From the NCBI RefSeq assembly GCF_964204865.1, contig NC_135250.1, forward strand, positions 4,340,001 to 4,404,000: a stretch of 64,000 nucleotides of DNA, given 5' to 3'. Position numbers and translations under genes: made by a program. The number at the start of each line of letters is the position of its first letter. Position 1 is the first letter of the stretch. Under the pieces are notes generated by a model. It saw only the letters and a list, made by a program, of their open reading frames with translations. It was not told where the DNA came from and made no database searches. This stretch comes from Styela clava. Taxonomy: Eukaryota. This document shows positions 4,196 to 33,218 of this stretch, piece by piece.

Positions 4196-7100
4196 TCACG
4201 TCCTGGTTACTGCCATATTTTCTTGCACATCTTCGACGTTATCATCATTTTTAACTTTATTTTTTCTTTGAAGATGCCGTTCGCTCAATTTAGCTTCTAC
4301 TGCTGTTATGTGAGGTGGAGGGCCGACAAGGCCCAGAATACAAGGCAGGAATATTAGTCCGTTCCAGAGACCATATCCAACGACACACACGAATACCTGA
4401 ATCATAGAAAAATTGCCTTTGCTATTATAATATTAATAGTAAACGTTTTAAGCGAGTTGATTGCTGAATAGTAAATGTTTTAACAAAAAGTTTAGAAGCA
4501 AGCTATATACCAGGGTTGTGGATTCGGATTTTGAAATGTTGAAATTCTGAACTGAACTTGAAATTTCATGAACCTGAAACGGTCCCAGAAACAACCAATT
4601 TTCAATTTTGCAAAAATTTAACTTACAGTGAAAAATACTTTGTAGGAATAAGTATTCGATCCGCTCAGTAACACAAGAGCTAGGAAAGTGCTGAATCCTC
4701 CATTGAATACAGCTGGTCCTATCTGACCCAGAGTGACGCGAACTCTCATTCTTTTAGTCCCACGTAGAGTGAGAAACTTATGGGCAACGTGAGCAGCGTA
4801 ATCGACAGCAAGACCAACTGAGAGCAGGAGTGTGATAATTGTACTGGTTTCAATTGTGAGACCTGTAAATAGTGAATGTGAGCATGTATAAATACAGAAA
4901 CTTCACCGAGCATCGACTTCCTTGTTAGTTTCCGCAACAACGTCTAATCAGCAGGAATTAACGGTGACGTAAAATATGAAACTTTAGTAATCGATCAGAC
5001 GCATTTCCAAGCATGTTTGTAATAATTGTAGCTTTTCGTATAGTTTTGACTGTTATTTGCCAGTTTTTATTTTTGTTTCCAAATTTTGGGAATAAATTCA
5101 GTTCTTAGAGGAACTTTGTCGAGGTGTTATCTGGATACTCCCGTAGTATGTGTACCAGGTTAGGATTAGGCCATAATTTTATTTCGATTCTCCCTATAAA
5201 GTTCTAGTACTCTTCTATTGAGCTCAGGGGCTGTCTGTGTTAGCCAAGTGAATATACACCCTGTCCATAGGTTTCCGTCCCTTTATACAACTTGATGTAA
5301 AATAGGCAAAGAAAATTGGTACACATATTTCTGAAGCGCCGTTGTTTGGTTGCAGCAATGTAAAACGACAAGGAAAAGCGATTAAAAAGCGATTTATCAT
5401 TACGTCAATATATCCCGCCCACCATCAACAACAAAACCATTCTGCAAAACGATCCATTTGTCAACTTTGCATTCAATAACTAACCCACCTGTGAAGTACA
5501 TGCTTCCGGCAACATCAATAATGGTGAACACAACACATATGACAACCCAGAAACTCATTTGTAGACTCGCTATCATTGGCAATACCATCACAAATACACA
5601 TAGTAATGTGATACCAAGGTTTCTGTAAACTTCTGATCTGATTATCTTCATGATACTGAATTGGAAGTAGGATCTGCAAATGAAAACGATAGTTGTTACC
5701 TTGTTAATTGAACAACAGATGTTATAATAAAACAGAGAATACGCGATCAAATACTATTGTTAATAAACGAGAACGCGACGCTCACATATAAGGACACGAA
5801 AGTCCAATAACAACTTACCGCAGTGCCTGTATGTAGCCATAAGCAGGCTTAAGCAGAAATGTGACCGAGCGCTAAACTTGTAAATCAAAACCGAAGACAA
5901 CCGTGACGTAGCCAGTTAGGCGGGAATAAAAACAAAAAAAAAACATCGATGTAATTGGTGAAATATCGAATCTCACGGGACTAAGAGGAGACTTGATAAA
6001 TTTCCTAATATCGAGTTGTGACACCATACTTCGGTTCTTGACGTGAATAAAATTGTTTTGAATATCCAGAAAGTTGCTTATATGCCGGCGCAATCAGAAA
6101 AATATATAACACATTTTTATTAGTTTCAAATAATTTTATTCTATAAACAAAATGTCTACCACCCCCTGAATTTGAAGACACCCCGCGGCCCCCCTTAAAT
6201 AGAAAAGATTGGTAACATACTGATGAAAAGGTAGTTAGTCGGTACTTCTGTAGTATGTGAGCCAAGATGGCGGACACCGGAACGTAGTATGTGTACCAGG
6301 TTAGAGTTAAGCCATAATTTCAGGTACAAATAATACGGGAGTCACTGAATTAGTCGTCGAACTCTTAATAGAACTAAAATAAGGAAAATTGGAATAAAAT
6401 TATGGCCTAACTCTAACCTGGTACACATACTACGTTCCGATGTCCGGTATTTTGGTTCACATACTACGGGAGCGCCAGTTAGTCTCGCGTAGCCCCAACT
6501 GATAGAAAATGTTAATCACCTATGAAATGGAAATGCAGAGTCGCTGAATCCCACTGAATCACAAACTTCATGCAAACTATCCATGATATCCACATTTTGA
6601 ACATTTTCTTCAACTGCTATGTGTTGAACGCGGAACCGCGATCCAACAATCTTCCCAAATCGCACTGCAACTTCCTACAAAATATAGGTCATTATTGATA
6701 AAGCTGAGTTGGGGTCAAAAGTTAACATGGGCAAACTACGGCCCGCGGGCCAAATCCGGACGGTTGCGTAATTCAATATGGCCCGCCTGATGCTGCCACA
6801 ATCAAACTAAAACCAAATTTTGAGGTTTTAGATGAAAAATAGTGCAAGGAATTTGTTGAGATTGCGATTAGCTTTAGTTTTGGCACGAGGCTTATTGTCT
6901 TCCACTTTCTCTTTCGTGACACTCTAAATATTGTTCATGAAAGGTATTCTTACGTCACACTTACATAGCCCGCCAGTCTAGATGGGAAAATTTTTGGCCG
7001 CTGGTCCAAACGAATAACTAGTTAGCTATTCCCATAACGGACATAGTAAGGGAACGAGAGGCCGTAGTTTGACATAAGATTGCTTTTCGTCCCGCGGAAT

Positions 7101-10017
7101 AAATATGAAAATCACATCTTATATGTCATATTCTATCATCACAAGGTGCTGAATATTCCACAAAGTTACAAAGGTTATTTAGAACATGAACTTACACTTG
7201 CATAAACTCTTCCTTTTCCAGTTAAATATTCCATGACAGACCCAAAGAACTGCTGGGAGTTAACATAAGCATCGTCTTTGTATATATCGGTTACATTCTT
7301 CTCTGTTGACATCCAGTACACGTAGTTCTCAAACCAACTGTATGAAACATTTCGATTTAGTTAAAAAAAAAATAACGTATCTGGCCTAAGGGGTATATAA
7401 CAGTGATATGATTTAAAATTAAAAAAAAAGGTTTCGACTTTTTTATCGAACTCACTAATAACAGGCCTCTCATTACAGAAAAAAAAAAACATAAGATCAC
7501 ATGCCAATAACAACACGCTTCCTATAGTCGTCATCTGCGTTCCACGTTACCCATTTGTTTCGGTTATCTAACGTCTCAAATTAGGAACTAGAACAGATTC
7601 GCTGATTATCAAGATCGTACATGCGAGTTTATGCGAACATGTGGATTCCTACCACTGGTGCATATAAAAAGCTTATTTCATTAGATCTTTGCAGAGGCGG
7701 GAACAGAACTTCTCAAAGGGGATGTCCTGAAATTTCTATTTGCCAAGTTTGATTGAAACAGCTAGCGGGTCCAGCTAAGGGGTCGTTGTCTTTCGAGGCG
7801 TCCCGATTTGAAGTCACAAAAATATGGTAACCCTGGTTAAGTCCAACTACTTGACCGGCATGCCAAAGCTCCAGCGCCGTAGCCAGGGTTGGTATTGGGG
7901 GTAGGAACCCACACCCCACCCATGAGCCTTGAGGGTCTAAAAAGCGTATATTTTTAAAATGTGGTGGGGTGTGGGTTCCTACCCCCAATACCAACCCTGG
8001 CTACGGCGCTGGAGCTTTGGCATGCCGGTCAAGTAGTTGGACTTAACCAGGGTTACCATATTTTTGTGACTTCACATCGGGACGCCTCGAAAGACAACGA
8101 CCCCTTAGCTGTGATTTTGTAACTTCACATTTTCCGATTTTACTACATAGGCCTACATTCCTCCTACATTTAAAGCTGTCTCGGCTAGTCGGCTGTCTTT
8201 ATTGACCATATTGTTATCGAAATTACATGCGCATATTCTCTGTCCAAATATCGGGTTCAGTTCGAAAAATAGGAAGGAATTTACGTTAACGATACCGGTA
8301 CAAATAATTCGAACTTAGACTAATTAGTATTGGTTTTACATGCGATACGCTCGCCCTCAATGGGAATCAGCGGGGAACGAACGCATTCACCTTCAGTAAG
8401 TAGGCTAGCGCTGCGCTACACAGAAACAACAGTAACGACAACATGTTTGTGTATTATGCTGGAAAAGCAGGACTTTTGGCTAACTTATCGGGACGGCGGG
8501 ACAAACGCTGAAAAGCGGGACTGTCCCGCCTGAAGCGGGACGTATGGTAAGCCTAGACTTAACCATATTGGGATTGCAGGTTGCATCTAGCGGCTTCAAA
8601 TCATATTCCCACAATCCCACCTTTTAATTAAGGGTGCAGTAAATTGGATAGAGAACGCCGAACCGTTAAGATTTCGGTCTGTCAAAATATTGTGGCATAA
8701 ATGACTAGTAGTCGGATGAAAGACATAAGCAACGTGCGGGGTTTGAAATATTATAGATAATGAAATCAGTGGCGATATAATACTCTTAACGTATAGCGCA
8801 ATTGGGCGTCGTGTTGACAGGAAGTTTGATTTTTAAGTGAAAGAAGAAGTGGGCCAGTCGCTGGAACGGAAGCTCTTAACAGCTTACTATTCCAGGTTAC
8901 TGCCGTCAAAATTGTTAACAATTGTGGTTTAATCAAATATGTTTAATCAAACATGTGCTGAATAATAAATACCTTGTTAAAGTTGTCGGGTCTATGTTAG
9001 TGTTTTTCTTCAATTTTTCGTACAAAATATGAAGTTTTTCTCTTTCTTCATAAAAATCTGCGTCGATGACAAAAATGGCGGCATCTTGCCCCGGAGCAAA
9101 GTACTTGTCGTATTCTTTGCCGAATGGAATCAGGTAACTGAAATGAAATTGACTTGAAATTAGGCTGTGAAATCAAGGAGTTAACCAGCATTTGGCAGCA
9201 TACTAGATAAACATCAATGAAATATCAAAAAACAATGCTCGAATATATATATATATATATATGGAAACGAAGGTTGCGCACCGGGATGGTGTGGTCTTAA
9301 ATGAGCAGTGGGTTTGATTAAACAATCAACCGACGTGCTGACGTGGTGTCAAAATAAACGAAAACAATCGAAACTTGGATTAAATATTGAGACCAATAGG
9401 ACTCGGATTATAGTTGAAACAAGAATAAAAAGAATAACCTTCTAGGTCAGATATGACAAACTACGGCCAGCGGTACAAATCAGACCCGTTGGGGAATTCA
9501 ATCTGGCCCAATTAAAATAAAACCAAAATTTGAATTCAAGAAATTTGTTGAGATTGCGAATAAATTTTGTTTTGGCGCGAGGCTCATTGTTTTCCCCTAA
9601 TCCTTTGTAACGCTTAAAGGTTGTTTATGGAATGTAAAAAACTTTTTACGTCAAATTTACATGGCCAGACAGCCTAGGTGGGCATTTTTTTTCACCCCCG
9701 GTCAAAAATCTAGCTACTTCTTCCATATGTAAATATCGAAAATTAGTCTCCCGTAGCAACGCTCAGAAATCAGTCTCGTCAACTTATGAGCGGTTCCCCG
9801 CGACCTTGCTTTGAGAAAATGTTCTTAAACAAGAAAATAGAAATTTCATTTACCTTTCTTGTGGAAGATACCAATCGGGATCGAAGCTGACTTTTAAGAG
9901 AGTGAAACCCCATCCCATGAGTGCAGTCAGTCCCAGGGTTGCCAGAATTACTGCGATCTGTACCGGAAACATCTGAACAACTTTTCCGATGACGTCTTCA
10001 AAGAACGTTGCAAAGAA
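4196..10017 (-). CDS. Fusion gene exons 13-19 (second RND repeat to stop)
   Basis: FDPDWYLPQESYL, SWFENY, GLAVDYAAHVAH, IGPAVFNGGFSTFLA, GLIFLPCILGLVGP; TGA at 4196-4198. Confidence 0.92.
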
Positions 10018-13000
10018 CTGAAATTTGATGTAAAAAATATTTAGTATTAAAAAAAAATCTAATTTCTCAAATAACATAATAAAAAAACAAAAACCATAAA
10101 CAAGTTTATTTTCAAAACTTCATAAAGAATTATCAACTTTTATATAAATATAAAAAAGAGAGGTCAAGAGTATTCCAGGAAAATGATTAGATTCTTTTTC
10201 ATGATACATGGTCCTCGTTCGGAGAACTTCCAATATTCCCTCTGCTCTTATATAAATAAACATACATTTGTTTTTAGTGGTTCCATTACATTTGAACCCA
10301 CGTACATTTGAACCCGTAATTTGAACCCACGACAATTGCATCTGCATACTATTGTACCTATGGAATTTATTTACGGATATTTGAACCCATACTAACCCTA
10401 ACCCATGGATTTTAGCACCCTCATATACATTGAACCCGCGGATATACGGGTGCAAATGTATTGGTTCAAAGGTACGGTCACCGTTTTTAGCGCATTTCCA
10501 TCAGTAATGTTATACGCATGCTTAAATACCAAAAAAAGAAAATAAATAAATGTATTATAGGCAACCAATTAATAAATAAATTACAGTCAATTTACTTTGA
10601 ATTGAATGTAGTCATGGAGAACGGTACCTAGCGAAGGCTTAGTTAGTGGCACTTACGAGGGCCGGGGCTCAGATTCGTTTAATTTCTGACTAGAAAAAAA
10701 TAAAAGGAAAAATATTGGCGATTGCGGTCTGACACGGAGTGTTGAGAGTCTTTGAAAGGGGCTGACGGAACTTGAAAGTTTGAGAAGCACTGCCAAGTAG
10801 ATTCACTTTGTCAGGCTGTGAAATAACGACATTAACTTACTTCTCGTTGGGAACATTCACTTTGCTTGTAATTTTCATCATGTTTGTAGCAACAGGCGAG
10901 GCATGCGTCATAATTTTCTTCTCTCCTTCGTTGATCAAGAACGGTGCATGCCAGGAATAATGTGCACTGAATAGTGTGAATACGTTTGTTTAGTTCGTAC
11001 AAAAATATACAGAAATAAGTTAATTCAAACATATATATGAAAATGTGTGGTGTTTTGCTAAATTTTCTTGTTGTTGTTAGCCTTTATTGTTGTTGTTGTG
11101 GCAGCTTTTTCGGTGGGAATAAAAATCCCTCCTTTCGGTAACTAATGGACCAATCAATTTCAAATTTTTAGTATCTAAGGATGGAAATAGTCGCCAGACG
11201 GCTATTTCATGTTTATCATATTTATTAATGTACAAAGAGTTGATAATCGCGATCATAATCATTGAAATAATAATCTGACGTATTGAGTGATGGCATAGTG
11301 GTTTTAGCGGTATTTTGCCATTTCAGATTACACGTCTCATCTTAAAATCCCATGCCGCCATTTTACCTAGAGTGTAATAAATTAGGCAGTCAAAGTTAAA
11401 GCGGAAAAATCCCGGTCTTCCAAAACAAATTGCTCTTAAGATATTGTTAGATGTTAAAAATGCTTGTAGCGGTAGTTATTCTGAGCGAATGTCGCGAATG
11501 AGCGTTTCATGAACAGAAAAACAAATGTCTTACTTGTAAAAAGAATAGCAATATAATGCAGACAGCAACATAAATACTGAAGGAAGCAAAGGAACCGAGT
11601 TCGCTTGATGACCCAACCGCAAATGCAACAAGATCAGTCACCGATGTCACAGTTATAGAGACTCCTGCAGACTAAAATTAAAACAGATTGATAAATGCAA
11701 GAATCGGAGTTTCATCTCGTATAATTCTGAGTGAGCGAGCGTAAGTAACGTACCGAATGTCCTTAGACTTGAAACTGTGAATGCTACATAACTGTATTTA
11801 AAAAAAACTTTGGGCATGATGATAGAGTGAATGGATGAGAGCTCACAATCAACCTAGTTTGGTAGAAAGTGATGTTACCGTGGTGATTTCAACAGCATGC
11901 TAACTGAAAATTTTAGAAAAGTCATCGTATTTCAAGAAAATCTCCAGTGGAAGCGCAATAATTAACTATTTATTATAAGTGTTACCTTCATATTTAGTAT
12001 TAAATAAATTGTCTTCGTTTTCGCTAAATATTTAAAAAATGTACGTAGTCTGATTTTGGGGGGAAATTGGAATTTGTATTTATTTGTACAGAGCAGATTT
12101 AAATAAAATGCTAACCTTCAATGCATGCCCAGATTTCTTCGCTAACGGCAGTTTTCTAAGATGTGGATCATCGTCAATAGTATTCCAAGATTGAATTAAA
12201 ATAAACATGTCATCCACTCCTATTCCAATAATGAGAAACGGGGCAACAAGGTGAATAACAGACCATTCGAATCCAAAGGAGGCGGATAAACCAATGCCAG
12301 CTCCCATTGACAAACCAGCGGTGACGATTCCCATCATGGCGATGTATGTTCTGAAATACGAAACTATGTATAATTTTTGTTTCGATTTATATTTTATAAG
12401 TCTGTCTGTCCAAAGTCGAACCTTACATATTTCGTTCTTTTGAAAATATTAGCTTCTTATATATCATTAGATATCAATGAATGCTTGCACAGGGCATTGT
12501 TCGAAGGCGTGAATAATCATCGTATAAAATAACTCACCTGTGTTCTAAGAGCGAAAATTTTCCAGTCATGAGTATGATGTAAACAAAAATGAGGGCAAAT
12601 CCAGCAAATAATAGAGGCAAATCTTTCCGGTAACCGGTCCCTGCTTCGAGTGACCGACTTCCGCGTGATTCTACGTAGACTGAAAAACCTTCGTATTCGG
12701 CGTTTCCCACTTCAATGAAAGCTTTTTCCCAGTCGTCGTCTTTACGTCTGGAATAAGTTGGAATTTATTGCAAAATTTTTTCATTGACATACATTTTACT
12801 TACATGTATTTCGTATGGCTTAGTGGTTATATTACGTTGCTTCCAAAAAGTCGTGTCCAACTGTCCCCACATTTTATAGCCCTTCAATCTTTATAGAACA
12901 CATACACCACTTGTCCCACTTTGCTACACTTGTCTCAAAGTTCCGAGTTAGGGTACATATATATTGGGGCAAATGGTTAAATGTAAGTGAATGGTGTGTG

Positions 13001-16000
13001 TATGAATTTCGTACAGGTTTATATTACTGCTGATGTTACGGTATCTTTAAAATATTGCCCCACACTTTTCCACACATTAACACACTTGTCCTACCAGTCC
13101 CGTACTTGTCCACACATGTAGCACTTGTACCATTGTTCTAAGTTAGGTTAAATAATTATTGTGTTAAAGTAAACATATGAAGTGGAATTCATGCTATTTC
13201 TGATTTAGAAGAGATATAACCTTTAGAAACTGATGAAAATCACTATTCAGCTATTTTCGCAATAAATATCATAAACAACAATAAACTAAGCGATTTGTTT
13301 TACTTACGACACGACGTAATACATTCTGTGGGCCTTTGCTCCTATGATATCTCCTTTGCCATCTCTTGTAATTCCTCCTGTAAAAGCCACAAGTATCATC
13401 AGTGAACTTTTGAATAAATAAAACAAATGTCAAACGGTGTATATTTACGGCATTTTATGTAATATTACTGGTATATTAAAATTTTAACTTTGATAATGGA
13501 CTTTTCCGTCTTATTGAACTTAAGTATATAAATTTCTGAACTGAACTATAAACAAATAAATAATACAATAGATCCATTTGATATGATAGAAAGTCAGTCA
13601 GGTTTTGAAAGTATCAGTTGGTCTCAATAGTTGCACATCAACTTGCGCTCTTAACAAAATGGCGATTCCCTTTTATACTTATTTTTGGAAACGACGCGTC
13701 GATGGGAATCTTCTAAACCAGGGGTGTGAAACCTTTAAGACAAAACCTTCTGTTCAAATCCGTGGGTTTCTATTAGAAAATAACTATTTTTTCTGCATCA
13801 CGAGGTTACCAAATCTAATGTATGGTTTTTTCAGCACCTGAGTCTCACAATTTTAGCGTTCAAAGTGATAAGATGGGGAAGGCATTAAATTTTTTTTCAA
13901 GGCTGGAAATAATTCACTGGAAATGGAAGCTGAAAATATAGCACTGGCGAAACGAAATACACAATTTCTTATGTTCTGGAATATTCGTTCTCATATTAGT
14001 CAACTTAGAAGATGAGACGAAAACGCTTGATTGAAAATTAAGATGAGATTTATGCCGGTAACTTCATTTTCGCTATGGCACTCGACATTTCGGTGTAGTC
14101 TGCCTGCTCTTATCAATCAAAATGGGAAAGCAATTTATCAGTAACCAATCAATAGAAAACGCATCAACATTTAAATAATCAAGCAAACAATTAATCTTTA
14201 GTCTCGGGCAGTATGTCAATTAACAGAATCTCAACACAAAAACAGGTATCTGGACCAGAACTTAACTTCAACTCTTTCAGTTTAAAGCCCGAGTTAACGC
14301 TCGTGTATTTTTATTTTCCAAGCTTCAACGCCCGAATTCAACAATTCGCCAATATATACTTTTCTTTCTCAAGAATCAACGCTCAAACTCTTCGAATTTG
14401 TGTCTTATTATCAATGTATATATTAAAATTAAACGTTTTGTGTGCCAAACAGATCAGATGATACATGGTTTATATACATTAACTGTGAATCTTAATGATG
14501 AATTCGGGGGGAGCTGACTTTGATGACCATATGGTCGTATCGCTCTCTCCAGTCTATACCGAATTAACTCGCTTATTTTGTATATATATATTTTGTTGTA
14601 CCATTGGTTGACGAAATAATAAATCTCTCTCTCTAATACAGAAGGGCCAAATACAAATAACTGGGTGAAACCTCACGCCGCATCTTTATTTAATAATATA
14701 AGCTACCTAGTAGTTGCAAGCACAAAAATTTTGGATAGAGATCTTATGACATGCGTTGGTAAAATTAAACTTTCCTAATTTTCGCGAACAGTATGTGAAT
14801 GACAATTTTTATTTTATTGTCAACAATAACATTACGATTTTTCCACTCACCTATCATCGTAGTTATATCGACTTCATCTCGGAATACTGGACTCACAAGA
14901 TCGCCGTTGATTTTTTCTTTTATTTCGTCGGTTGTCACCATAGCCAGAGCAGTCTCGTTGAAACTCCAAAACTCAAACAATGAACGTTCCTTACATTGTC
15001 CTGCTGACTTTGTGCAAATCTGAGAAAACGTTCTTCCTTTTGTACCGTTGAGGCTTCTGATTCTGAATTTAGATTAAGATCACATTTTTTTTGTTTCCAT
15101 TTCAAACCTCATTGTCAAAATATGGTTTCGATTAACAAGTTGCGAAGTTCACCTCGACTTTTGACAGGAAAAAGAAGGCGGCGATTCCAAATTTGCGTCT
15201 GAACCGATTTGAATAAGTTAATTTTCGATTCGAAATGCCCAGCTCTGGGCGGGAGTCGAATACGATTGTTAGTTTTCACAACACCGAATCAGGATGCTCA
15301 TCGTCATGTCTTTTATGGACAACAAATGGATACTCCCAAAGTGTGTGAACTAACATGGCGGAAACCGGAACTTAGTATGTGTACCAGGTTAGGGTTAGAC
15401 CATAATTTCAGGTGCAAATAATACGGGAGTCACTTGGCTAGTCCCCAAACTCGTAATAAAACTAAAATATACGTTCTACTACGTTCCGGTGTCCACCATC
15501 TTGGTTCACATACTTCGGGAGTACCAACAAATCACTATGAGCCATTGTTAGGAGGCTCGACTTATTTGCTTAACTGGACTTAAACCCGAGTCACCATTTA
15601 TTAAAGACTTGAAGTGACTCGAATCATCTAAATAGAATGACTAGGATTCGTCAACTAACTGCCGAACGCGACTCAGTGATTGATTGACTCGACTATTATC
15701 CGTGACTCAACCTGACTCGGAATACTTTAACCCGACACTGCTATAAACCACACCAGAACTTACTTTGCGTCAATTTTTGCCATTGCCCTGAACTTATCTT
15801 CAGTAAGCAAATTGTCTTCAGCGACAATTAATATTGTTTGATCTCTATCTACAACGGGGAATGTCTGTCTGTATGCAACATATTCCTTTATTATTTGCGC
15901 GTCTTCTGGCAAAAATCCACTGCTACCCGTGGGTTGTTCTCGGCGTTGTAAGAGGCCAATGAAAAGAGTTCCTGAGAACATAAAATAAAAGTGTTATAGT

Positions 16001-19000
16001 TTAGGGCAGGGGTGTGCAACCTTTTTTATTGGCGGGCCAAATACAAGTAACTGGGTGAAGCCGCGGGCCGCACCTTTTTTTAGTTTAGGCCTTCTGGTAG
16101 TTGCAAGCACAAAAATTGCCTATATTTGCTATTGATCTTACGGCATTATTAGAGGTTCTTGCAGAAATAGTAGATTTAAAACGCATAAACTTCTGGAGTA
16201 ACTGCTATTTAAATTTTTTGTCACACCGACTTCAAACGAATGCAGTGAGAAACACGTTTTTGTAATATAAATCGTGTATTTTGCAACAGAATTTTGCTAG
16301 CTTGTTTTGCTAATATGACTGGTATGGACTTTGCGACGTAAAAGAATAAATACTCGTTTTGCGGGTACACCATTCGAAATTGTTATTTCTCCGCGAGCCG
16401 CACAACTTCTTCTTGCGGGCCGCTTTTGGCAGTTTGCACATCCCTGGTTTAGGGCATTGGTTCTCAATCTTTTAAAGCCACGCCTCATTTTTAGAATTTG
16501 TCCAGTTTTGCGCCCCACCTCAAAAATAACTAGCTACAATAAGCTAAAAATATCAGATAGTAAAGCGAAAGTACGTTCAATTCAAAAACACGTTAAAAGA
16601 CGTGGATGGAAAGAAAATAATGGAATAAGTGAAAATTTTTGAAATGTAAACATCGAAAATAAGGAATCCGATCAGAAATAATGGAAATACTCAATTGGAC
16701 TCGAGTATTTGATGAATGGTAACAAGTGCACAAGTGGACCCGTATACGTATAACGCAGGGATGCTGTAGCAAGAATAAAGATGACTACATACGACTACAA
16801 ATTTCTAATACTTAAGATACAGTGAATTTGAAATAATTGAGATACAGCACTCAGTCGAACTGTTTTGAGTCTTGTCTCAATCAGCATTTTGTAGCGTGTA
16901 ATCCGACATCATATATATATCCATATAGTTTCAGTAGATCTTGGCATTTCAGGGGTCGCCCATATTTTTGCTCAGATTTGAGTTTCCTTCACTTTTGAGT
17001 GAGTGCGCGTGGCCTTGCTTTGGGGGATTTTTTAAAAAAAATACTCACCTGTAAGAATCAACGAGAGTAGTATCACCATCTTCGGGTTGCTCCCTACTTG
17101 CACTCCCAACCAGTAAAATCCATTTTCCAGTGTCGAAGAAATCGCGTCAGGTATCTTTGCATACCACTTCTTTTTTGTTTCCTCTTTATCTTTCGTGACG
17201 TCACCAGTTGATGACGCATTATCCACTACTTTTGACATCGTGATGATGGCGGTATCAGGTGATTTGTCTACTCCGTTTTGTTGATTTTCTTGCTCGGACT
17301 CTAGCGCCATCTCGTTTTGGTAAACTTGCGCGTCCTTGATTGAATTCTTTTTCGAGTCATTGTCCCTTTCTTGTCGTTTGAGAATGCCGGCCATAAATAT
17401 TACAAACATAATGAAGTCGATGAACACCAGGACGACAAACGGCAGAACGAATGCAAATAGAAAAACGTGTAACGTTGACTTGTCTTCAAATGTTAAAGTG
17501 TCTCCGTCCGTGGTGTTGACTGTAGGCGTTGGTAATGATTGTGATGTCATTTTGTCATAGCAACCATCTGGCCAATAAATGCGAAGAGTTTCGTTGGCGT
17601 AACAAGATGAATCTTTCAATCGATATTCGTCAGGAGAATCGAAACCACAGCAAGAGTACTAGAATGAAGAGAATAATACGTGTTAAATTTTTATTTTATA
17701 TATAAATAGATGATAATCTTGTCGAATTACCGTTAGCCTGCCAGTATTCAACGTTAGTATGTATTAATTCAGACTTTCATGAGTTTTATTCGCGTTATCA
17801 TTCCTCGTGGATTAGGTGCAGAAATAGATACGGCATAGGATGGGGGTCCATCAAAAATAAGACTCACAAACAGAGGTCCGCCGCCCAAATAGTTTGGGAA
17901 ACTCTGCTTAGACAACTGTGCAGGTTACACAACTCTCAAATCTTATGCCCACCACCTTGGGTATCAGTAATACGGCAGGGAAATAAGGAAATGTTAAACA
18001 AACGGAAAAGATTCCGGTCAAAAATATTAGCCCCTTATATATCGTTAGGTACTAATCTGTCAATCAATCAAATAAATCGATACGCTAACCTCTAAGACTA
18101 AGTAGAAGACTTTTCCAACTTAATGCTTAAAGTTACGATTTTCAAGGCTTAGTTGAAAAGCCTTGCTAGAGGCGAAAAGACACATCGAAGAAATATCCAT
18201 AAATCGCAATATTGTTGCCCAAAAGATTTTTTTGAATCTAGTACAGTCTTACGTGATTTTGTATCAAGTTTTTCGTTCTCATATCAGCTTCTTTCCAGAC
18301 TTCGCCAATATATTCTTTTCTGGCATCAGTGGGAATTAATCCCCAGATAAGCAATGCTAGAGCTAAACCGGTGTTAATGATTAGAAACACAGTGACCTGG
18401 AAAAAGAGAAATGTCATATAAATTAAATATACAAGAGAATACTATAAAGCGAAATGAATTTGTGTCAAGATGTTAAAATTCTGAGCTGAACACAGACATA
18501 TATATATTTTGTAGAGTTTCTTCTAACCAAGGTCAGACTATTACGTTCACGATCAGCTAGTTGAATCAAATTTTTCTGTGATTGATTGATATGTCGACCT
18601 TCTGAATGAATCGGCAATTTTTTGACTTTGTTTATTTATTTAAATTATAGATACATGACGAAATTTGAGGAAAAACAGTAGTTTATCATTATAACAACGT
18701 TGTTACCTCGCTAAGCACTCATTCTTTTTTATTTTTGAGTGAATTCGCGTGACCATAAAAAATATCAGGGATTCAATAAAAATAAGATAAACTTACGAAG
18801 ATATGATAAAGTCGTTTATGTGCAAATGTAGCAATCAACGCAAGTGTGCATGCCAGAAATGTGATTCCGCCCATTCCTATTAGCCAGTGAGAGAGAGGCT
18901 GAAATAAAGGTAAATATTGTTACGACTTAAAATATAGATAATAGGTTATATATATATCTATATAACGGTGCTTCAGAAACCAACACTAACCTGGTACACA

Positions 19001-22000
19001 CACTACGGGAGTACCGCTCAATCAATACCTATATACTATGGCTGCTACTGCAGTGCGAGGTGTACCGTCATATGTCGCTTCATTACCCTTATCAATTGTA
19101 TATGTAGTGGCGTATCCAGGGTATGGCAACCATGGCTCGTGTAGTGGGAGCCGTTTAGATTGGGGGCGCAAAATGGGTAAAAAGTTTCAATCGCAAAATG
19201 TTTCAATAAAATAATTTCAAGTTGGATATAATTTAAACTCGTATTTATTCTTAAATATTAACGTATAAGTTGTTCAATTTTAACCATGGTTGTTAAAAAT
19301 TTTCAGTCAACGTTCAAGAATGCGACTTTTTCAAACTTTGCCATAGGCGCCATTTAAAGAAGATGCCCCACTGTGTATATGTATCACTATCGTCATAATA
19401 TATTTGTTTTATAAAATATAATTGACACAATGTACAAGTGATGTTGAAACAACTCCGAACTCAAAAAGGTTATACAAGCAGCCTGACAAGTGTATACCGT
19501 AGTTGTTTTAAGATAACGATTACTTTGTAACCGCCATCTTTATTTATCATAACACAATAATATACAAAACGAAATGAAAAATATGATTAGTAATGAGGGC
19601 TACCGCGAGTTCGTACATCGACCAAATGTTACCTCGGACAACTTTGGCCTCCTTCACACAGGGAAATAAGTAGAAGTTGAAAACAGTAGAATTATTGATA
19701 TTTGCTCGCCAAGTGGCGCGTGATCTGGTGTATATATATTTAAAAAAAAACGAAAATTTAATCGACGCCAGACACGGCTAACCCGCCAAGCAAGTCACAA
19801 ATATATACAAAAATTAACACATCGTTGATCGTTGCGGAGTGCTGGTCTACGCGGCGATGTGACCTAAATCTGGTCTTCCCGAACTGGGAGTCGCGTCCCC
19901 ACAGAGGCCGCGAAATGAATTTTAACAAGCCATGTTCTAAATAATACACTAACAATATGGTGAGAATGAACAAAATATTACAGATTAAAATTTGTGTAAA
20001 AGTGATGCAATATATCTAAACCACTCAAGAATCTGTTATTCCGGAAATAAGGAGATTTTCAGCTTTCTTGGTAACTAAGAAATCGCGCCCAACTTTCTAC
20101 TAAATCTTAGTATTGTTGGTATTTAGTTTAAAACACAACACTAATTCTATGAATAACACGGTGACTCATTACTACGGTGATAACGTTGCGATGATGTTTA
20201 CTAATTCAGTTACTGAAGACTAATATTGTTGAAGGTTCCAAGAAACGATAATCATGTAATAACATTAAAACAGGACAGGAGCGGATTAGCTTGTAATTAT
20301 ACTGAGTTGTTAGTGGTAAAAATGGGAGAAAGGCCTGGAAGTTTACATTCAAAGTGAGTATAAAATTCCGTAGACGGTTTGAAAGTGGGTTTGGTTTAAA
20401 TAAATTTATTACTAGAACAGAAACGACCTAAAGAACGGTCAAATTGCGTCACCCGAGAAATGATTATGACGCCATCACTTTCGTCATAATAATTTTCTTC
20501 TTTCATGAGCGTTTATTGCGTCGGATTAGAAGAAATGCTTTAACTAATGAGTTTACAACAGATGAAAATTGTTCCTACTTTCATTACAAACAAGTCTCTC
20601 CGTGAGAAACTATTGTAAGAAGTTAATATTTTTTTAGGGAAAGACCGAAATATTTTTCGCAACTAAGCAATTGAAGCAATTCTCATTTTAGAATTTTCTA
20701 ATCATTACCGAAAAACAATTCTAACATAATGAATCCTGCCTCGATTCCAGGAATAATAGAAATTGAGTTTACAAGATTTCGACCAAGCGCGAAGAATGGA
20801 AACATGAAGGAAGACCAACCATGTAAATTGATTAAAACCAATGTTCCGCTTGAGAACAGGTTTCAAATTTTTTTTGCTGTGGTTATTTTAATGCTGACCA
20901 CGCTTCACGCTTTCAATTTTAAAAACGTACGCTTGATAATTGCACTTTAAGGCAGAGGTGTGAAACCTTTATTACGTGAGGGCCAGATACAAATAACTGG
21001 ATGAAACCGCGCGCCGCACCTTTACTTAAACATAGGCTCCCCCTGGTCTACTGATAAGATCGTTTGACAAAACAATGAAGGCGTTGCAGATTAAATGTAC
21101 CGGATTTCTCATTGTCACCATCTCATTCGTGTACCGTATTTCACAGATCAAAAGGCAGACCGGGTAATCAATAATGTGATTAGATTGGGTTTTTGTTCAT
21201 ACACAAGGCGTACCGGACTATAGAACGCAACGGATTTTCATGTATAAAACAATAGTAACGGTACTGGTTTTGAGTGTGAGCAATATAGCATGAATCATTG
21301 TCTGAACCGTACATTAGCCGCACCTGACTATAACACGCAAGCGGTAATGGTGCTAGTTTCGAGTGCGAGCAATAAAGCATAAAGCACCATACATTAGGCG
21401 CATCGGCTTAAAAGACGCTCGATCGATTTTTGATAGGAAAATAAGATTTAAAGTGCGCTTCATTATCTGTAAAATTCAATAATAAATCAGGTAAGCAATG
21501 GCGAAGCAAACGGTATGATCGCGATACACCATTTTGAAATATTATACATAGGAATTCGCGTGCAAACAGCTGAAATAGTAACCTCGTTATTAAATTTCAT
21601 CAAGTTTAAATTACACAAAAGTATCATATAGGTATCAAATAGGTATTGTGCTCAAATATGCCAAAAATATGCTGTACTCCTGTAGTATTTGTACCAGGTT
21701 AGGGTTAGGTCATAATTTTATTCCGATTTTCCTTATTTTTGTTCTATTACGTTTTCGGGAACTGTCCCAAACTGTTTGAGCAGACATATTGAAATAAAAT
21801 TCTGTTTTTTTCTCTCTGATTTATATCAGATTTCATAACATAAAAAATCTCTAAATATCTTACGTAGAATGAGTCTCTTTCTATTTATTGAATTTTGAAC
21901 TTTGATTCACCTGATTAAAAAACTTTAGCTAAATACTTTGCGGTGTTATCGATTAGGGTTGCACGTTAATTATCCTGACAGTTCTACCTCACCAGTATTT

Positions 22001-28000: not shown

Positions 28001-31000
28001 ATCATTAAAATGGAAAAGTATATCTCAAACTCATTCTCAGTCAAACCTAGTCCAATTCACAACTCTTGACGAAACTATTGGTTTTTACCGATATCAATCC
28101 GCATAATCTTGAGAAACCGGTATCGTGGGAAACTCAGTTATGCTTTCAAGTTGGTATAAATTTATGATGATTATTTTGAATCATTGAGAGAATAGGTACA
28201 TGCGGTTTAGCCGATACATTAAAGGAAACATCGAACGAGAGATAAGAAAATTGTCGCACGACCTGGCCCGCTTTGTTAAGTTTACTTCACTTTTATCTCA
28301 CTGGTTTCGCAGAAATACCTTCATCTTTCTGTTTGTGTACAGGTTGTTTCAGCTCATGTAAATAAATAAGCGTTACCGCGATTTTTATCGTAACGTTTCC
28401 AAAAATGCTAACGACACGATACATAAAAATTTCTTGGAAGAACAACGTGGTCCCCACGAGTAAATAAACAATGTTGATTGTCGATATACTTATTACGCGT
28501 TTATATAAAGAAAAATGATACAAACTGACTGGCGAGTTCAACTACAAAAAAATATAAAAAGCTCAAAAATCGAAGGGTAGAGTAAGCCTTCAGACAGTGG
28601 TTTTGGGGGAAAAAACGCAAAAGAACGATAAGCTGCAGAAACTTTTATTTACATGGTGTTAAAAGTAACACAAAATTAACAGAAGTTAAGATGAAATGCT
28701 ACTTCAAACATTTAACTACTGACATCTTTTAACAGTATTGAATTACGGCAAAATGCCATTTAAACATTTCATGACTGACACCTTTTAACAGTATTGAATT
28801 ACGGTGAAATGCCGTTTTAAACATTTCACGACTGACACCTTTTGACAGTATTCAATTACGGTGAAATGCCGTTTTAAACATTTCACGACTGACACCTTTT
28901 AACAGTATTGAATTACGGTGAAATACTGTTTTAAACATTTCACGACTGACACCTTTTAACAGTATTCAATTACGGTGAAATGCAATTTAAAACATTTTAC
29001 GACTGACATCTTTTACCAGTATTAAATTACGAAGAACTTCCATTTAAACATTTCACGACTGACACCTTTTAACAGTTACTTTTTTACCGTTGTCATGACG
29101 AAAAATTGAACCTTAATTTTTAACACCCTGTATTGTTGATATAATTTAATTGATCCTTTAGAATTAGATCATGATGGTCCAAATCCATAACGTTAAGTTC
29201 ATAGAATTTTCAAACCGAACCGAGCATGGCACTGAATGCGTCTGCGATTTGTTGCCATTTGTCGAATTATAATTAAATTATAGGCTCATTAAACGAGTAA
29301 TTGTGAATTATACTTGTTAGAATATAATGTAATTTAGTCTACACGCGTCTCACAATGAATTGTGTAACGTGAAAAATATAATCGTCAAAACAGCTGTTTT
29401 GTTACTATAATTCAGTAAAGCGTCGCGGGCCGGATTACGTTACTCCGCGGGCCAGACCCGGCCCACGGGCCGTAGGTTGCTGACACCTGGCCTAAACGTT
29501 CACAAAACAACGCAATGGTGTCCAACTAAAAGCTAGAATGCATGGTATTTCGGAAATTCGGGTGGAAATACCTAGGGGCTCCACCCACCTCCTCAGAAAC
29601 GAAACTTCTACAAAAATTTTGTGCCATTGCGGTCCCTGAGTAAAGTTACTTTTTTACTCTTGCAGCGTCATATTTGTAAGACAACGAAATAGTTCGAAAT
29701 ATTCTTAACTTCAAAAGCTTATAACTTTCTAACAACTAAGCAAGTAGGGTATTGAGACATTTCAAAGAAAAGCAGATGTGATCGTGAAATCAGAAAATAA
29801 TATCATATTTTGTACATACATTTGATCAAAATATGTCCTAAATACAACTAAGTTTTCCATGGACATAATGTCATCAAATGAAGATGTTTAAAAATTAAGC
29901 AAAAATATGTTATTCAAAACACGCAATAAAACCTTTGCTAACGATTACAAATGATATGACTGTAGTAGAACATCTTAAAATAGAGAGAAACAGCCAGAAT
30001 AGATAGATTATTTGCAAAACTGTAATCTTATTTACCCCATTGCCATCAAACTATATCTCAGACCGATTCAATAAATTCAGTACACCAAACCTGTACACAA
30101 AAAAATTAAATACTTCTTACCCTGAAGGATGCACAGTTTTCCGCAATTTCTTCGACATTTGTTTCACCCATGGTAATGATTGCTAGAGGTATAGTTGCGG
30201 TTATGAGGATTGCACCCATATTCTGAATAAATTGTAATAATTAGATTTTTTTGACTTTTTTTTTTTGTACGGATTTCATATAGCACAATAATTTACGTTA
30301 ACTCTGAAGTATTTCAACGACTTGCGTACTTTTACCATATGACTCTGATCACGAATAAATTGCCTGCCTAGATAAAGCCTTATTGTAAGCAAAACTTGAA
30401 TAAAACATATCTCAAAAGTTTGGTGAAATGCATTTAATGTCGAACTAAGGGGTTGTGGCATAACTTAGAGCTGGGTTTCCCTAACTGGGGGTCACGATCC
30501 CGCAGGTGGGCGCGCAATGGATTTTAGGGTCGCAAAGAGTACACTAATTTCACACAAGTTGTACATTTTTCAGACAATTCAGCAAATGAAACCTATTTTT
30601 GCTTTCACAGTCTCGCAGTAGCGTCTATAGTGCTTATTATCATTATGGCCATATTTTATTAGATTTACTACCATTATTACATTCGTTGTTTAACATTATT
30701 TCAAATATTACATATAGTCATATATACAAAGGTTTAAAAACATACTATTTGAATGTTTTAGAATCAGTGGTTTTTGAGGGGGCGTGAAGCTGATTAAAAT
30801 TAAAATATTTGTTAGATTTGATCTTGCCCGCCTTATATGGATATTTACATTTCAAAACTTTTCATTTACTTTATTAATTACGTTCCATTCACGTATTTTC
30901 AACATGTTTTTTGTTTAAAACACACTTTACTATCTGTTATTTGTAGCTTATTGTTAGCTAGTTATTTTTGAGGTGGGACGCGAGACTTGACAAGTTCTAA

Positions 31001-33218
31001 AAAGGGGCCAAAAACGTTTGAGAACCACTGCATTGGATTGTGAAAAGGAATTTGCTTTTCGCGTTCCCCAGCAATTTTGCATTAAATTGACCAGCATTTA
31101 TGTGCTTGTATTACATGCTATCGTGTTATCTTTGTGTTAGTATTTATATTTCTCATTCAAATCTATATGATACTATAAAAGCTGAAAAATGCCGCTATAT
31201 TAGGGTTTCGTGAGTTAAAGCTTTTAAAAATGCCACAAAATAATGCAGTACCTCATTAAACGTCGTTATATGTTGAAAAATGAATTTTTGAATGATTATA
31301 AGTTTATTATAAGGCGGAAATGTTAGATTACCCATTCTAAATTTTTCAATACAGTAGTCCGAAACCGGTAGAATTGTCATCAAAAGTAAATTAGACGAAT
31401 TGAATATTAACTAAATGTTTTTAATTATGAAAGTAAAATTGATAATTGATAATTGATTTTTGATCTAAGATAATAAACATAATTGTACTAAACATAGCAA
31501 TTGAATTTGTATCGTCTGCGTCAGTCAAAGTGACATAATACCACATTCGCTTAAAATTGGTCTTTGATTAGAACTATGTAAATGTTTTTACTTTTATGTT
31601 TCGATATCAACAAGCGATAAAGTCTAAAACGTTCTTACTCATTTCATGTTCACGCAGAATTAAGTAATGTCAAGCTACGTACTTTTAGAGAAATTGGCCA
31701 GGAGAATTGACTTTCAAACTTGAATCAGGAGTTTATAAACATAAATAAATAATATGATTTAACTTAAAGAAACTCTTAAATCGTGTAGTCTTGTTTATTT
31801 TTGGTACAGTATACTTGCATTATACATTGCTTACGGATCTACAAGCGCAAAGGCATATAGGGAGGATAAGTAGACAGTCTTGCTTGACCACAGCAACTGA
31901 TATTTAATTGAAATATAAATTAATAATTGTTTTTACAATTAATATAATCAATTTCCGTCAAGCTGTGTTTTAATGGATGATTCAAAATCTCACGAAAGAA
32001 GTTTTTGATATTTCCAAATAAAGTTTTTTGCTTGAGTTTAATTGTGGAATACTGTACAGAAAAAGTAATAACATGGACAGTAATAAATAATTTTTAAACA
32101 AAAAGGAATAAGCTAACTTCAAATAGTAACTTCGTTTTACAAAAGACAGTATACTTTCAGCAATGTGTCTATATTTCCTCTTGTTTTATGTTTCATATGC
32201 CACACTTGTTGACATATTTTAGGTAAATTTTGTTTATGGAACAACATGCAGATACGTTGCATGTACTCAAATAAGTCAGTTTCGACCGCCATATAAGCAT
32301 CAAGTTCATAGGTATTTATATCCACAAAAAATTGAATAGACTCTTTTATATCCATATTATATTTATCATAACAAAAACCCGCGTATAGGATGCTTGTGGT
32401 TATGTTTGACATTTAAGGTTTTAAGGTCGATTTTGAAAATGAACTTGATAATTTAATATACAAATACATTTAGATAAACATTCTTTCATAATGGAAAAAG
32501 ATTTGCGCGTTCATTTAGAGTTCAACGTTCTCGTTAAATTGAATTGCGTTGAGCGTTGAACGAGCGCTCTGTATAAAAAAGCGGTCAAATTTAGACACAG
32601 ATTTTTGGTGGGTGTTGATTTGGTTGATATAGCGCAACTAACCACGCCTCATTACAAGAAACGGGAATATAAAGTCATTCCATATTTGTATTCATAGTGT
32701 TGGCCATCTGCTGCTTGATATTAACGTTTCAGTGTAACTGACCATTCGTATAGCAGTTTATATTATATTTAATTTGTAATATAAAAGGATTAAAATTAAT
32801 GATTCGTGGTATTTTATTGTGAATTTTCATGACAGGCGAACGAGCAAAGTACAACATTATTTAATCACTATATTCTCATTTGTTGCTCACAAAATAAGAA
32901 TAGTGATGTAACCCTATAGAATTTGAATATCAAATAAAAAAAAATTGGACGAGACTGCGATTGCATTCGTCACTGCATTCGTCACGGAGCAAAATTCAGA
33001 TGATAAACAGTTTAAAGACAGAATAGGAAAACATTTTTCAGAATGTGCAAAACCATATTAGCAGCAAATTCACTAAAATGGCATATTCAAATGAAGGGAG
33101 GAAAAAATCAATTTAAAAATATCATATTAAATCAAATTACCATGCCAACAAAACTGAAAATAGCTCCCAACTTCCAATCTTGAAAATAGAACTTTCGTTC
33201 CATCGCAGACATCGTCAT
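4196..33218 (-). CDS. Tetraspanin-Patched-domain (PTCHD3/NPC1-like, sterol-sensing RND) fusion protein, 19 exons, ~1160 aa
   Basis: Exons 33218-33141, 30222-30121, 18898-18797, 18396-18253, 17658-17049, 15971-15764, 15062-14851, 13377-13308, 12747-12538, 12350-12116, 11671-11534, 10966-10841, 10017-9854, 9137-8973, 7337-7196, 6674-6520, 5673-5489, 4862-4627, 4396-4196. Total 3483 nt, all phases compatible, all GT-AG. In-frame TAG upstream of the ATG. Motifs: CCG (tetraspanin), GIGVDDMF, AGVSITVTSVTD, GLAVDYAAH, GPAVFNGGFST (Patched family). Confidence 0.88.
5134..5340. mobile_element. Merlin-like MITE (type A)
   Basis: Family termini and internal ACAACTTGATGTAAA block. Confidence 0.7.
6241..6476. 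mobile_element. Merlin-like MITE (type B, long TIRs)
   Basis: GG...CC termini, ~75-bp TIRs, perfect 8-bp TSD AGTTAGTC. Confidence 0.85.
7772..8111. repeat. Near-perfect inverted duplication (149-bp arms, 42-bp spacer)
   Basis: 7772-7920 is the reverse complement of 7963-8111 with one mismatch seen. Confidence 0.95.
8048..8555. mobile_element. hAT-type MITE
   Basis: TIRs CAGGGTTACCATA / TATGGTAAGCCTA; perfect 8-bp TSD GACTTAAC. Confidence 0.82.
10278..10483. mobile_element. MITE with internal ATTTGAACCC repeats
   Basis: Repeated CATTTGAACCC units, central CTAACCCTAACCC, flanking direct repeat TTTTTAG. Confidence 0.6.
10841..12350 (-). CDS. Fusion gene exons 10-12 (sterol-sensing domain)
   Basis: PFLIIGIGVDDMFILIQSW; SAGVSITVTSVTDLVAFAVG; LDQRRREENYDACLACC. 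Confidence 0.93.
12538..15971 (-). CDS. Fusion gene exons 6-9 (Patched first luminal domain to TM2)
   Basis: Exons 15971-15764, 15062-14851, 13377-13308 and 12747-12538, including GGITRDGKGDIIGAKA and WEKAFI motifs. Confidence 0.88.
15329..15525. mobile_element. Merlin-like MITE (type B)
   Basis: TIRs; TSD AACAAATG/AACAAATC. Confidence 0.78.
16007..16446. mobile_element. hAT (Charlie-like) MITE
   Basis: TIRs CAGGGGTGTGCAA / TTGCACATCCCTG; perfect TSD GTTTAGGG. Followed directly by the start of a second MITE related to 48187-48503. Confidence 0.82.
17049..17658 (-). CDS. Fusion gene exon 5 (CCG-EC2, TM4, cytoplasmic linker, start of Patched TM1)
   Basis: YSCCGFDSPDEY...DGCYDK...FIDFIMFVIFMAGILKR...STLENGFYWLGVQVGSNPKMVILLSLILT; one open frame, tag/gtgag. 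Confidence 0.92.
18253..18396 (-). CDS. Fusion gene exon 4 (TM3 and EC2 helices)
   Basis: VTVFLIINTGLALALLIWGLIPTDARKEYIGEVWKEADMRTKNLIQNH; cag/gtaag. Confidence 0.87.
18797..18898 (-). CDS. Fusion gene exon 3 (tetraspanin TM2)
   Basis: PLSHWLIGMGGITFLACTLALIATFAHKRLYHIF; cag/gtaagt. Confidence 0.85.
22680..22958. mobile_element. Foldback-type MITE with CCGCAGGAAATTT subrepeats
   Basis: Inverted arms (GCAGGAAATTTCACCGC...CCGCAAGAGCATTTT versus AAATGCTCTTGCGG...AAATTTCCTGCGG). Confidence 0.6.
23621..23949. mobile_element. hAT-like MITE family E copy
   Basis: Homologous to 51051-51464; ends GAAATGCCCAGCTCTA. Confidence 0.65.
25470..25745. mobile_element. Interspersed repeat with GTTT/GTCT microsatellite (DINE/Helentron-like); second copy at ~26290-26620
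   Basis: Two diverged copies of GATCGGTAAGTATGTTGATAGGTATTTGTCTGTTTG...ATCTCACGAAAGC...AAATTTTGCATGTG. The class assignment is inference. Confidence 0.55.
26860..27910. repeat. Compound minisatellite, ~100-130-bp units with embedded (TG)n tracts
   Basis: About 9 units of AAGTTGACTTATTTTG...GCATGACTCAGAATATTCATCAGTG followed by variable TG repeats. Confidence 0.85.
28652..29130. mobile_element. Tc1/mariner-type MITE containing a 57-bp tandem array
   Basis: TA|CATGGTGTTAAAA ... TTTTAACACCCTG|TA. ACTGACA recurs at 28718, 28774, 28831, 28888, 28945, 29002 and 29058. Confidence 0.75.
30121..30222 (-). CDS. Fusion gene exon 2 (TM1 end and EC1)
   Basis: NMGAILITATIPLAIITMGETNVEEIAENCASFR; cag/gtaag, phase 0-0. 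Confidence 0.72.
33141..33218 (-). CDS. Fusion gene exon 1 (N-tail and start of tetraspanin TM1)
   Basis: MTMSAMERKFYFQDWKLGAIFSFVGM; donor gtaatt; upstream in-frame stop. Confidence 0.7.

Follow-up and report, generated by a model that had tools for sequence, protein, structure and literature searches.

The tetraspanin family has been called 'free from domain reshuffling' (PMC2965184), and the locus described here raises the question of whether a tetraspanin can nonetheless form part of a larger membrane protein. It lies on the minus strand of a 64,000-nucleotide (nt) stretch of the Styela clava genome (assembly GCF_964204865.1, contig NC_135250.1, positions 4,340,001 to 4,404,000), hereafter the window, for which an earlier sequence-only reading had proposed a full-length tetraspanin fused to a sterol-sensing transporter of the Patched/NPC1 family. 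We conclude that the locus is very probably one intact, spliced and transcribed gene for a real fused polypeptide with 16 transmembrane (TM) helices, whose frame leaves the tetraspanin part and runs 920 residues further, beyond the size of a stand-alone tetraspanin (~200-350 amino acids, aa). The fusion, taken together with the working mode that we propose for it below, is likely the best explanation of the data as a whole.

The join between the two parts can be read directly in the DNA. A stop-to-stop frame at 17658..17035 of the minus strand is open for 208 codons and carries, in order, the motifs YSCCGFDS, SSCY and DGCY, a hydrophobic helix of 31 residues, a hydrophilic segment and, lastly, the motif FYWLGVQVGSNPKMVILLSLILTG. 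This frame is bordered by an AG acceptor abutting 17658 and a GTGAGT donor past 17049, which delimit an exon 5 of 610 nt, and therefore the end of the large tetraspanin loop, the fourth tetraspanin helix, the linker and the first Patched helix share one exon. The earlier statement that a stop-free frame passes through a hydrophilic linker into a complete Patched-domain protein was borne out by exon 5 together with the gene model below.

In order to delimit the whole gene, we used a script for GT/AG boundaries guided by P0012 (UPI00193A37CE), the RefSeq/UniRef 'patched domain-containing protein 3-like' of Styela clava, which represents the same gene with 19 collinear exons. The resulting model contained 19 exons from 33218 to 4196, with all introns GT-AG and no stops in 1160 codons, and agreed exactly with the coordinates, ATG and exon number of the sequence-only reading. 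The window frame and P0012 were identical at 1148 of 1160 residues (99%), and the 12 differences look like polymorphism. The window contains no runs of N, and the computed mass of the product is 130.4 kDa. Pfam, AlphaFold2 and Foldseek were run on P0012 as a proxy, while the window itself was scanned exon by exon; the joined window frame was assembled in scripts for the checks of reading frame, identity and codon changes. The features of the gene are as follows:

4196..33218, minus strand: whole coding gene, 19 exons, 1160 codons and stop (GT-AG script model against P0012).
33141..33218, minus strand: exon 1, aa 1-26, start codon with the N-terminal tail, and tetraspanin TM1 up to its midpoint (phase-0 intron next).
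30121..30222, minus strand: exon 2, aa 27-60, remainder of TM1 (with polar N27) and small extracellular loop, followed by a phase-0 intron.
18797..18898, minus strand: exon 3, aa 61-94, tetraspanin TM2 and short cytosolic loop (RNA joint 18795/18394, cut offset +2, in four runs).
18253..18396, minus strand: exon 4, aa 95-142, TM3 and constant part of the large loop, with last residues IQNH (RNA joints on either side).
17049..17658, minus strand: exon 5, the junction exon, aa 143-345, CCG loop, TM4, linker, Patched pre-TM1 helix and start of Patched TM1 (spliced contigs end to end, in four runs).
17644..17652, minus strand: CCG motif, C145 C146 G147, with further loop cysteines C161 and C175.
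17380..17472, minus strand: tetraspanin TM4, aa 205-235, with polar D223 (hydropathy and AlphaFold2).
17170..17376, minus strand: cytosolic linker, aa 237-305, hydrophilic, unconserved and predicted to be disordered.
15764..15971, minus strand: exon 6, aa 346-414, last part of Patched TM1 and beginning of extracellular domain 1 (RNA joints 17048/15970 and 15764/15062).
14851..15062, minus strand: exon 7, aa 415-485, extracellular domain 1 (model and RNA contigs).
13308..13377, minus strand: exon 8, aa 486-508, extracellular domain 1 (RNA joint 14850/13376).
12538..12747, minus strand: exon 9, aa 509-578, last part of extracellular domain 1, then Patched TM2 (model).
12116..12350, minus strand: exon 10, aa 579-657, TM3-TM4 of the sterol-sensing domain with GIGVDD (Pfam Patched sterol-sensing domain, 60.6 bits, exon alone).
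12226..12209, minus strand: GIGVDD, read directly from the DNA.
11534..11671, minus strand: exon 11, aa 658-703, TM5 of the sterol-sensing domain (Pfam Patched sterol-sensing domain, 39.1 bits, exon alone).
10966-10841, 10017-9854, 9137-8973, 7337-7196, 6674-6520, 5673-5489 and 4862-4627, minus strand: exons 12-18 (model).
4627..10966, minus strand: span of exons 12-18, with TM6-7, extracellular domain 2, TM8-11 and GLAVDY (model).
4815..4798, minus strand: GLAVDY, read directly from the DNA.
4196..4396, minus strand: exon 19, aa 1095-1160 and stop, TM12 and C-terminal tail (model).

Evidence that this gene is transcribed across the junction came from public RNA data. Exon 5 was contained in 13 public runs, and the contigs of four runs from four studies were aligned to 13100..19099 of the window. 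The joints 18795/18394, 18253/17658, 17048/15970, 15764/15062 and 14850/13376 were present in all four runs and represent exons 3/4, 4/5, 5/6, 6/7 and 7/8; their ends are CT..AC, equivalent to GT..AG on the minus strand, and agree with the model borders given the stated cut offsets. Contig X13-6 (3775 nt, 0 mismatches) contains 321 nt upstream of exon 3 and exons 3-7 before continuing beyond them, and its size would correspond to a full mRNA of 141 nt, a 3483-nt coding sequence and 151 nt. Contigs X1-5 and X5-14 cover exons 3-4-5, and X6-16 covers exons 5-6-7. Spliced contigs of four runs thus supplied the transcripts across exons 4, 5 and 6 by which the sequence-only reading had suggested that the fusion be checked.

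These contigs also bear on the possibility that the fusion is an artefact, in the form of a mis-assembly, a read-through chimera or a wrong model that merges neighbouring genes. Automatic predictions do sometimes merge neighbours, and intron 2 is 11 kb long and repeat-rich. However, the junction lies within one exon and requires no splice, and the same fusion recurs in the RefSeq model, in RNA contigs from four studies, in distant homologues and in the two paralogs that lie on a different contig. An artefact would require one error common to all of these independent sources, and we regard this explanation, which is extremely unlikely, as refuted in practice.

It is also unlikely that the one gene serves to make two proteins, whether by use of a promoter or start within exon 5 (M259 or M283, for instance) or by proteolysis of the linker, with the fusion ensuring co-expression. 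Such an arrangement would be compatible with the nature of the linker, which is 69 aa long (aa 237-305), is predicted to be cytosolic and disordered (AlphaFold2 predicted local distance difference test score, pLDDT, <50 over residues 271-304 of P0012), is unconserved, and carries basic residues at each end, K/R-rich clusters and in-frame Met codons; furthermore, assembled contigs are blind to transcript starts. However, the linker frame is open in every copy, even at 9-22% identity, which would be needless if translation restarted; spliced contigs connect the tetraspanin exons straight to exon 5 and onward, and no cleavage signal was identified.

In the same alignments of four RNA-like runs, the intronic stretches 15300-15700 and 18900-19100 reached a summed contig depth of up to ~43,000, compared with ~10-28 for the exons of the gene. 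Joints tie 15468 to 18987, and these stretches resemble copies of an interspersed repeat that is abundant and possibly transcribed.

The N-terminal module (aa 1-236) is a full tetraspanin with a four-cysteine large loop of the CD81 type. The Pfam tetraspanin profile PF00335 (length 225, gathering cut-off 32.1 bits) matched P0012 with 46.4 bits (E=5e-12) over residues 20-181 and profile positions 7-192, and the scores of the other fusions P0010 (44.9 bits), P0011 (37.5 bits), P0009 (37.1 bits) and the distant P0024 (32.8 bits) were all over the cut-off, with the matches of full-length fusions spanning profile positions ~10-200 of 225. When window exon 5 was scanned alone, it matched PF00335 at E=0.036 over profile positions 142-192, the expected CCG region. 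A profile of the seven N-extended proteins searched against the sequences of the PDB matched a tetraspanin of solved structure, CD53 (6wvg), over positions 31-175 with E=0.0028, and in an ESM Atlas search with aa 1-240, which we treat as a lead, the nearest 30 of 30 clusters were tetraspanin clusters.

We considered whether this module might instead belong to another family of four-helix proteins, such as claudin/PMP22, MARVEL, MS4A or L6. The modest E value of exon 5 alone and the result of the PF00335 scan for the distant homologues P0023 and P0040, which gave no match, would be in keeping with this. However, five full-length members scored over the Pfam cut-off and no other four-TM family scored, and the CCG motif with two further cysteines, the CD53 profile match and the Atlas neighbours were concordant. 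Membership of another family is therefore very unlikely.

The predicted layout of the module also agrees with that of a tetraspanin. Hydropathy of exons 1-5 showed four hydrophobic segments at approximately aa 17-46, 64-87, 90-117 and 201-238, and the AlphaFold2 model of P0012 placed helices at 12-43, 60-86, 89-114 and 207-268, with short helices at 118-130, 133-143, 151-156 and 175-181 in the 83-residue large loop; pLDDT in blocks of 10 residues was ~66-87 in TM1-TM3 and the first part of the large loop, and ~79-82 in TM4. Together with PF00335 on P0012, this upheld the earlier assignment of four hydrophobic segments and tetraspanin architecture to exons 1-5. The motif IQNH/YSCCGFDS straddles the exon 4/5 junction, with SSCY and DGCY downstream, and these last two motifs, like GIGVDD and GLAVDY, were present in the DNA as first read. 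The pattern of the large loop is CCG-x13-C-x12-GC, in which C145, C146, C161 and C175 were invariant in 7/7 fusion proteins and the G of CCG was replaced by S in 1/7; the four-cysteine pattern CCG--C--(G)C is the one listed for CD81 (PMC2965184). Polar residues occupy mid-membrane positions at N27 (TM1), N102 (TM3) and D223 (TM4), each of which was polar in 6/7 homologues (N/E in TM1, N/T/H in TM3 and D/N/S in TM4), and which may correspond to Asn18, Glu103 and Glu219 of CD9/CD81, as judged by helix depth. The large loop contains sequons at N164 and N190, and basic residues follow TM2 and TM4. From these features we infer a topology with both ends in the cytosol, a small first loop, a very short inner loop and a large second loop. 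The four introns within the module are all phase 0, and the 14 introns of the Patched part are of mixed phases. Ancestral tetraspanin introns are reported to be all phase 0 (PMC2650405), and the resemblance that we claim to ancestral introns 1-4 extends to this shared phase.

The remainder of the protein (aa 306-1160) is, by its sequence, a PTCHD3-like member of the Patched/NPC1 family of RND proteins with a sterol-sensing domain, although the name PTCHD3 is an automatic annotation and the closest relatives with a name are PTCHD3-like proteins of invertebrates, at 35-38% identity. On P0012, PF12349 scored 121.6 bits and PF02460 scored 108.5 bits, so that all three of the Pfam families expected by the sequence-only reading (PF00335 with PF02460/PF12349) were recovered. 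A profile search against the PDB matched NPC1 (3e-71) and PTCH1 (2e-58). The AlphaFold2 model of the whole of P0012 (mean pLDDT 85.8; predicted TM-score, pTM, 0.82) contained 4+12 TM helices, giving the 16 that had been predicted, and in this model the Patched part formed two 1+5 repeats, with a large extracellular domain following each of TM1 and TM7. Foldseek with this model found NPC1L1, NPC1, NCR1 and PTCH1 at E values of 1e-39 to 1e-29, with target-normalised TM-scores of ~0.75 for NPC1L1 and NPC1, ~0.7 for PTCH1 and ~0.7-0.8 overall; the best 50 matches were RND proteins only. Sequons are also present in the Patched extracellular domains. Residues G623, D625, D626, G1032, D1036 and H1040 were invariant in an alignment of 100 homologues, and GIGVDD in TM4 and GLAVDY in TM10 occupy the positions that we take, from knowledge of PTCH1 and RND pumps, to be the intramembrane cation relay. 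As these positions are intact, there is no sign of a dead transporter.

In order to place the fusion among its relatives, we searched with exon 5 against 1.84 billion representatives by phmmer. The eight matches consisted of one full-length fusion (P0003), six short junction-exon or Patched-end fragments and one weak match (P0008) that is probably unrelated; stand-alone tetraspanins were absent from the matches of this search. P0003 has 1081 aa and matched exon 5 at residues 315-366, and therefore carries a 300-residue N-terminal extension. Word-based searches identified P0003, P0009, P0010 and P0012 as Styela clava 'patched domain-containing protein 3-like' proteins, whose precomputed Pfam lists contain PF00335, PF02460 and PF12349, and when the N-terminal regions of P0003 and P0024 were used as queries, such searches returned three proteins each and no named relatives of the distant clade to which P0024 belongs. 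Among the 120 Patched-family matches listed, PF00335 was confined to the fusion clade. An ESM Atlas search with aa 1-720, again a lead, found no large cluster combining both domains.

The 377 Mb genome contained three junction exons, each open as one uninterrupted frame; one of them is that of the window, and the remaining two are on contig 2 with 15 kb between them. The latter belong to the genes of P0010 and P0009, which are arranged in tandem on the plus strand (G000:C2:22266426-22276000 and 22280544-22290000; loci L004-L010), share the positions of their tetraspanin-module introns with the window gene and, at ~10 kb each, are much smaller than that gene with its 29 kb. P0003 (X2) is a predicted isoform that differs from P0009 (X1) in the absence of 95 residues of extracellular domain 1, equivalent to window exons 7-8; this shortening may be due to exon skipping or to a gap in the model.

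Beyond these paralogs, P0011 and the fragments P0001, P0002 and P0004 stem from other assemblies, and P0024, P0023 and P0040 (Logan, JGI data) were 31-32% identical overall, with the same layout and aligned N-terminal cysteines. The latter subclade comes from unannotated assemblies and metatranscriptome-like data. P0002 and P0004 (Logan) are different junction-exon fragments, for each of which the longest contig was 34,501 nt; they may share one contig, and a tandem pair of fusions may thus exist in another species. The fusion architecture was therefore present in the window gene and six other proteins, namely the two tandem paralogs and at least four proteins from other organisms, and this collinear architecture in six other proteins is far beyond chance. 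Our searches yielded both paralogs and distant homologues and showed the architecture to be rare; its lineage range looks narrow.

In a maximum-likelihood tree of 45 proteins, the seven N-extended proteins fell on one side of a branch with a Shimodaira-Hasegawa-like approximate likelihood ratio test (SH-aLRT) support of 100. This tree rested on Patched-only columns, the tetraspanin columns having been dropped with too few rows filled. As the N-extended proteins form one clade, a single origin is the simplest reading, in which an old fusion would have joined the 3' end of a tetraspanin gene to the first exon of a PTCHD gene.

We also compared the rates at which the parts of the protein have diverged. 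Identity to P0012 was, in Styela-type relatives and in the distant clade respectively:

Tetraspanin TM1-3: 29-35% and 21-25%.
Large loop: 37-40% and 24-26%.
Linker: 12-22% and 9-15%.
Sterol-sensing domain: 60-67% and 41-45%.
TM8-12: 72-79% and 52-54%.

Variants within the species were taken from the RNA contigs of other individuals and classified by codon. Among the variants listed, to which all of these counts apply and beyond which there were 15 more, the tetraspanin part (aa 61-236) had nine synonymous and one non-synonymous, the linker had one synonymous and four non-synonymous, and the Patched pre-TM1 helix and TM1 had four synonymous and none non-synonymous; the ratios in the tetraspanin and the linker differed (Fisher p=0.017). 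The tetraspanin part is clearly under purifying selection within the species while evolving faster than the pump, and the linker is unconstrained.

Several observations weigh against the reading of this gene as a tetraspanin fused, in one working polypeptide, to a transporter. The support for a single polypeptide comes from DNA and RNA contigs, and additional transcripts that start inside exon 5, or cleavage of the linker, may be compatible with the assembled contigs. Of the folded parts, the tetraspanin evolves fastest (21-40% identity); among the three distant homologues, two scored under the Pfam threshold and one has CCS in place of CCG. The tree was made by a quick search, with both fusion subclades on long branches, and the variants outside those listed may bear on the selection result. 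Finally, docking of the tetraspanin (aa 15-233) against the Patched core (aa 336-1116) gave a score of 0.00, which is no evidence either way.

How might such a fusion work? The predicted topology would allow it: both the end of the tetraspanin and the linker are on the cytosolic side, and Patched TM1 runs from inside to outside. We propose that the Patched part would be a cation-gradient-driven exporter or flipper of a sterol or another lipid, like PTCH1 and NPC1, and that the tetraspanin part would act as a permanently attached cis partner with a fixed 1:1 stoichiometry. In this role it may direct folding, exit from the endoplasmic reticulum and placement in tetraspanin-enriched, cholesterol-rich membrane patches, and might possibly tune the pump via its lipid-binding cavity. 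Tetraspanins escort and organise partner proteins through contacts of their TM helices and large loop, and CD9 and CD81 have a central lipid cavity lined by mid-membrane polar residues (PMC7105497). The pairs CD81-CD19, CD9-EWI-2 and TSPAN15-ADAM10 exemplify in trans the working mode that we propose (PMC7105497), whereas in the fusion the partner, a 12-TM transporter, is linked covalently. That the tetraspanin is an organiser or regulator of the transporter in cis is a tentative proposal, to which we give slightly less than an even chance.

A more direct arrangement, in which the tetraspanin bundle would dock on the sterol-sensing domain and its cavity would pass sterol to or from the transporter, as a membrane-embedded analogue of the NPC1 N-terminal domain, seems to us doubtful. 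The polar residues in the middle of TM1, TM3 and TM4, compared with the lining of the CD9/CD81 cavity (PMC7105497), and the whole-protein pTM of the AlphaFold2 model would accord with such a relay. However, the docking score favours neither side, the flexible linker of 70-110 aa is unlike what a rigid relay would need, and the cholesterol-binding Glu219 of CD81 is not shared by tetraspanins in general (PMC7105497). The analogy itself is with NPC1 and NPC1L1, which also bear an N-terminal lipid-handling module before the RND core and are the closest functional parallel to the fusion; the module of NPC1 is a soluble luminal domain with one TM helix, in contrast to the four-helix tetraspanin described here.

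Broader still, and quite improbable in our estimation, is a Rosetta-stone interpretation in which animal PTCHD/PTR transporters would generally use a tetraspanin subunit whose cavity loads or gates the sterol-sensing domain, the two having been fused in ascidians. If true, this would name the missing class of partner for the poorly understood PTCHD/PTR family and would provide a mechanistic tie between tetraspanin microdomains and sterol transport. We know of no RND or Patched-family partner of a tetraspanin, and to our knowledge few partners or substrates are known for Patched-domain proteins beyond PTCH1, NPC1 and Dispatched. Returning to the proposal of a cis organiser or regulator, the conserved covalent link provides the testable hypothesis that tetraspanins escort or regulate Patched-type pumps, in ascidians and, in trans, in other animals.

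Comparison with known proteins places the fusion relative to each of its parts. The PTCHD3-like/PTR proteins of invertebrates, among them amphioxus, hemichordate and mollusc sequences (for example P0013 from Branchiostoma, P0017 from Ptychodera and P0053 from Pecten), were 35-38% identical over the Patched part and share with the fusion the sterol-sensing domain and the invariant GxGVDD and GLAVDY-type motifs, but proteins of this type have no tetraspanin, and their sterol-sensing domain begins at ~280 as opposed to ~560-600 in the fusions, ~300 residues earlier. PTCH1, NPC1 and NPC1L1 (6w5r, 7n4u and 6rmg, among others) have the same 12-TM RND fold with two extracellular domains, at 16-19% identity. 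The fusion resembles CD81, CD9 and CD53 in its four TM helices, small and large loops, four-cysteine pattern and phase-0 introns, and perhaps in its mid-membrane polar residues, but differs from them in that its C-terminal tail runs into another protein and its sequence is very divergent.

The earlier statement that no described protein with this architecture was known held for papers, as we found no such fusion in the literature on tetraspanins with Patched, PTCHD3 or sterol-sensing proteins, on Patched of Styela clava and on tetraspanin introns; it did not hold for databases, which contain the RefSeq prediction and a Pfam list combining PF00335, PF02460 and PF12349. The public name of P0012, which has the paralogs P0009/P0003 and P0010 in Styela clava, covers the Patched part only, and we found no text commenting on its tetraspanin. 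The fusion is rare but already in automatic annotation, and a description of it was absent from the papers found. A fusion to a 12-TM transporter, natural and under selection, departs from the view of tetraspanins as a closed architecture (PMC2965184), and a single-chain, 1:1 pair of tetraspanin and client could ease structural study.

Two introns contain further repetitive sequence. The 11-kb intron 2 holds tandem units of ~100-130 bp, each with a (TG)n tract, at 27121-27892 and 6.8 copies of a 57-bp unit at 28692-29076, and these arrays together account for the strong GC/AT skew at 26-28 kb. In intron 14, at 7713-8122, the same frame of ~50 residues (VGCGFLPPIPTLATALELWHAGQVV...) can be read on either strand at neighbouring positions, which suggests an inverted repeat of a mobile element.

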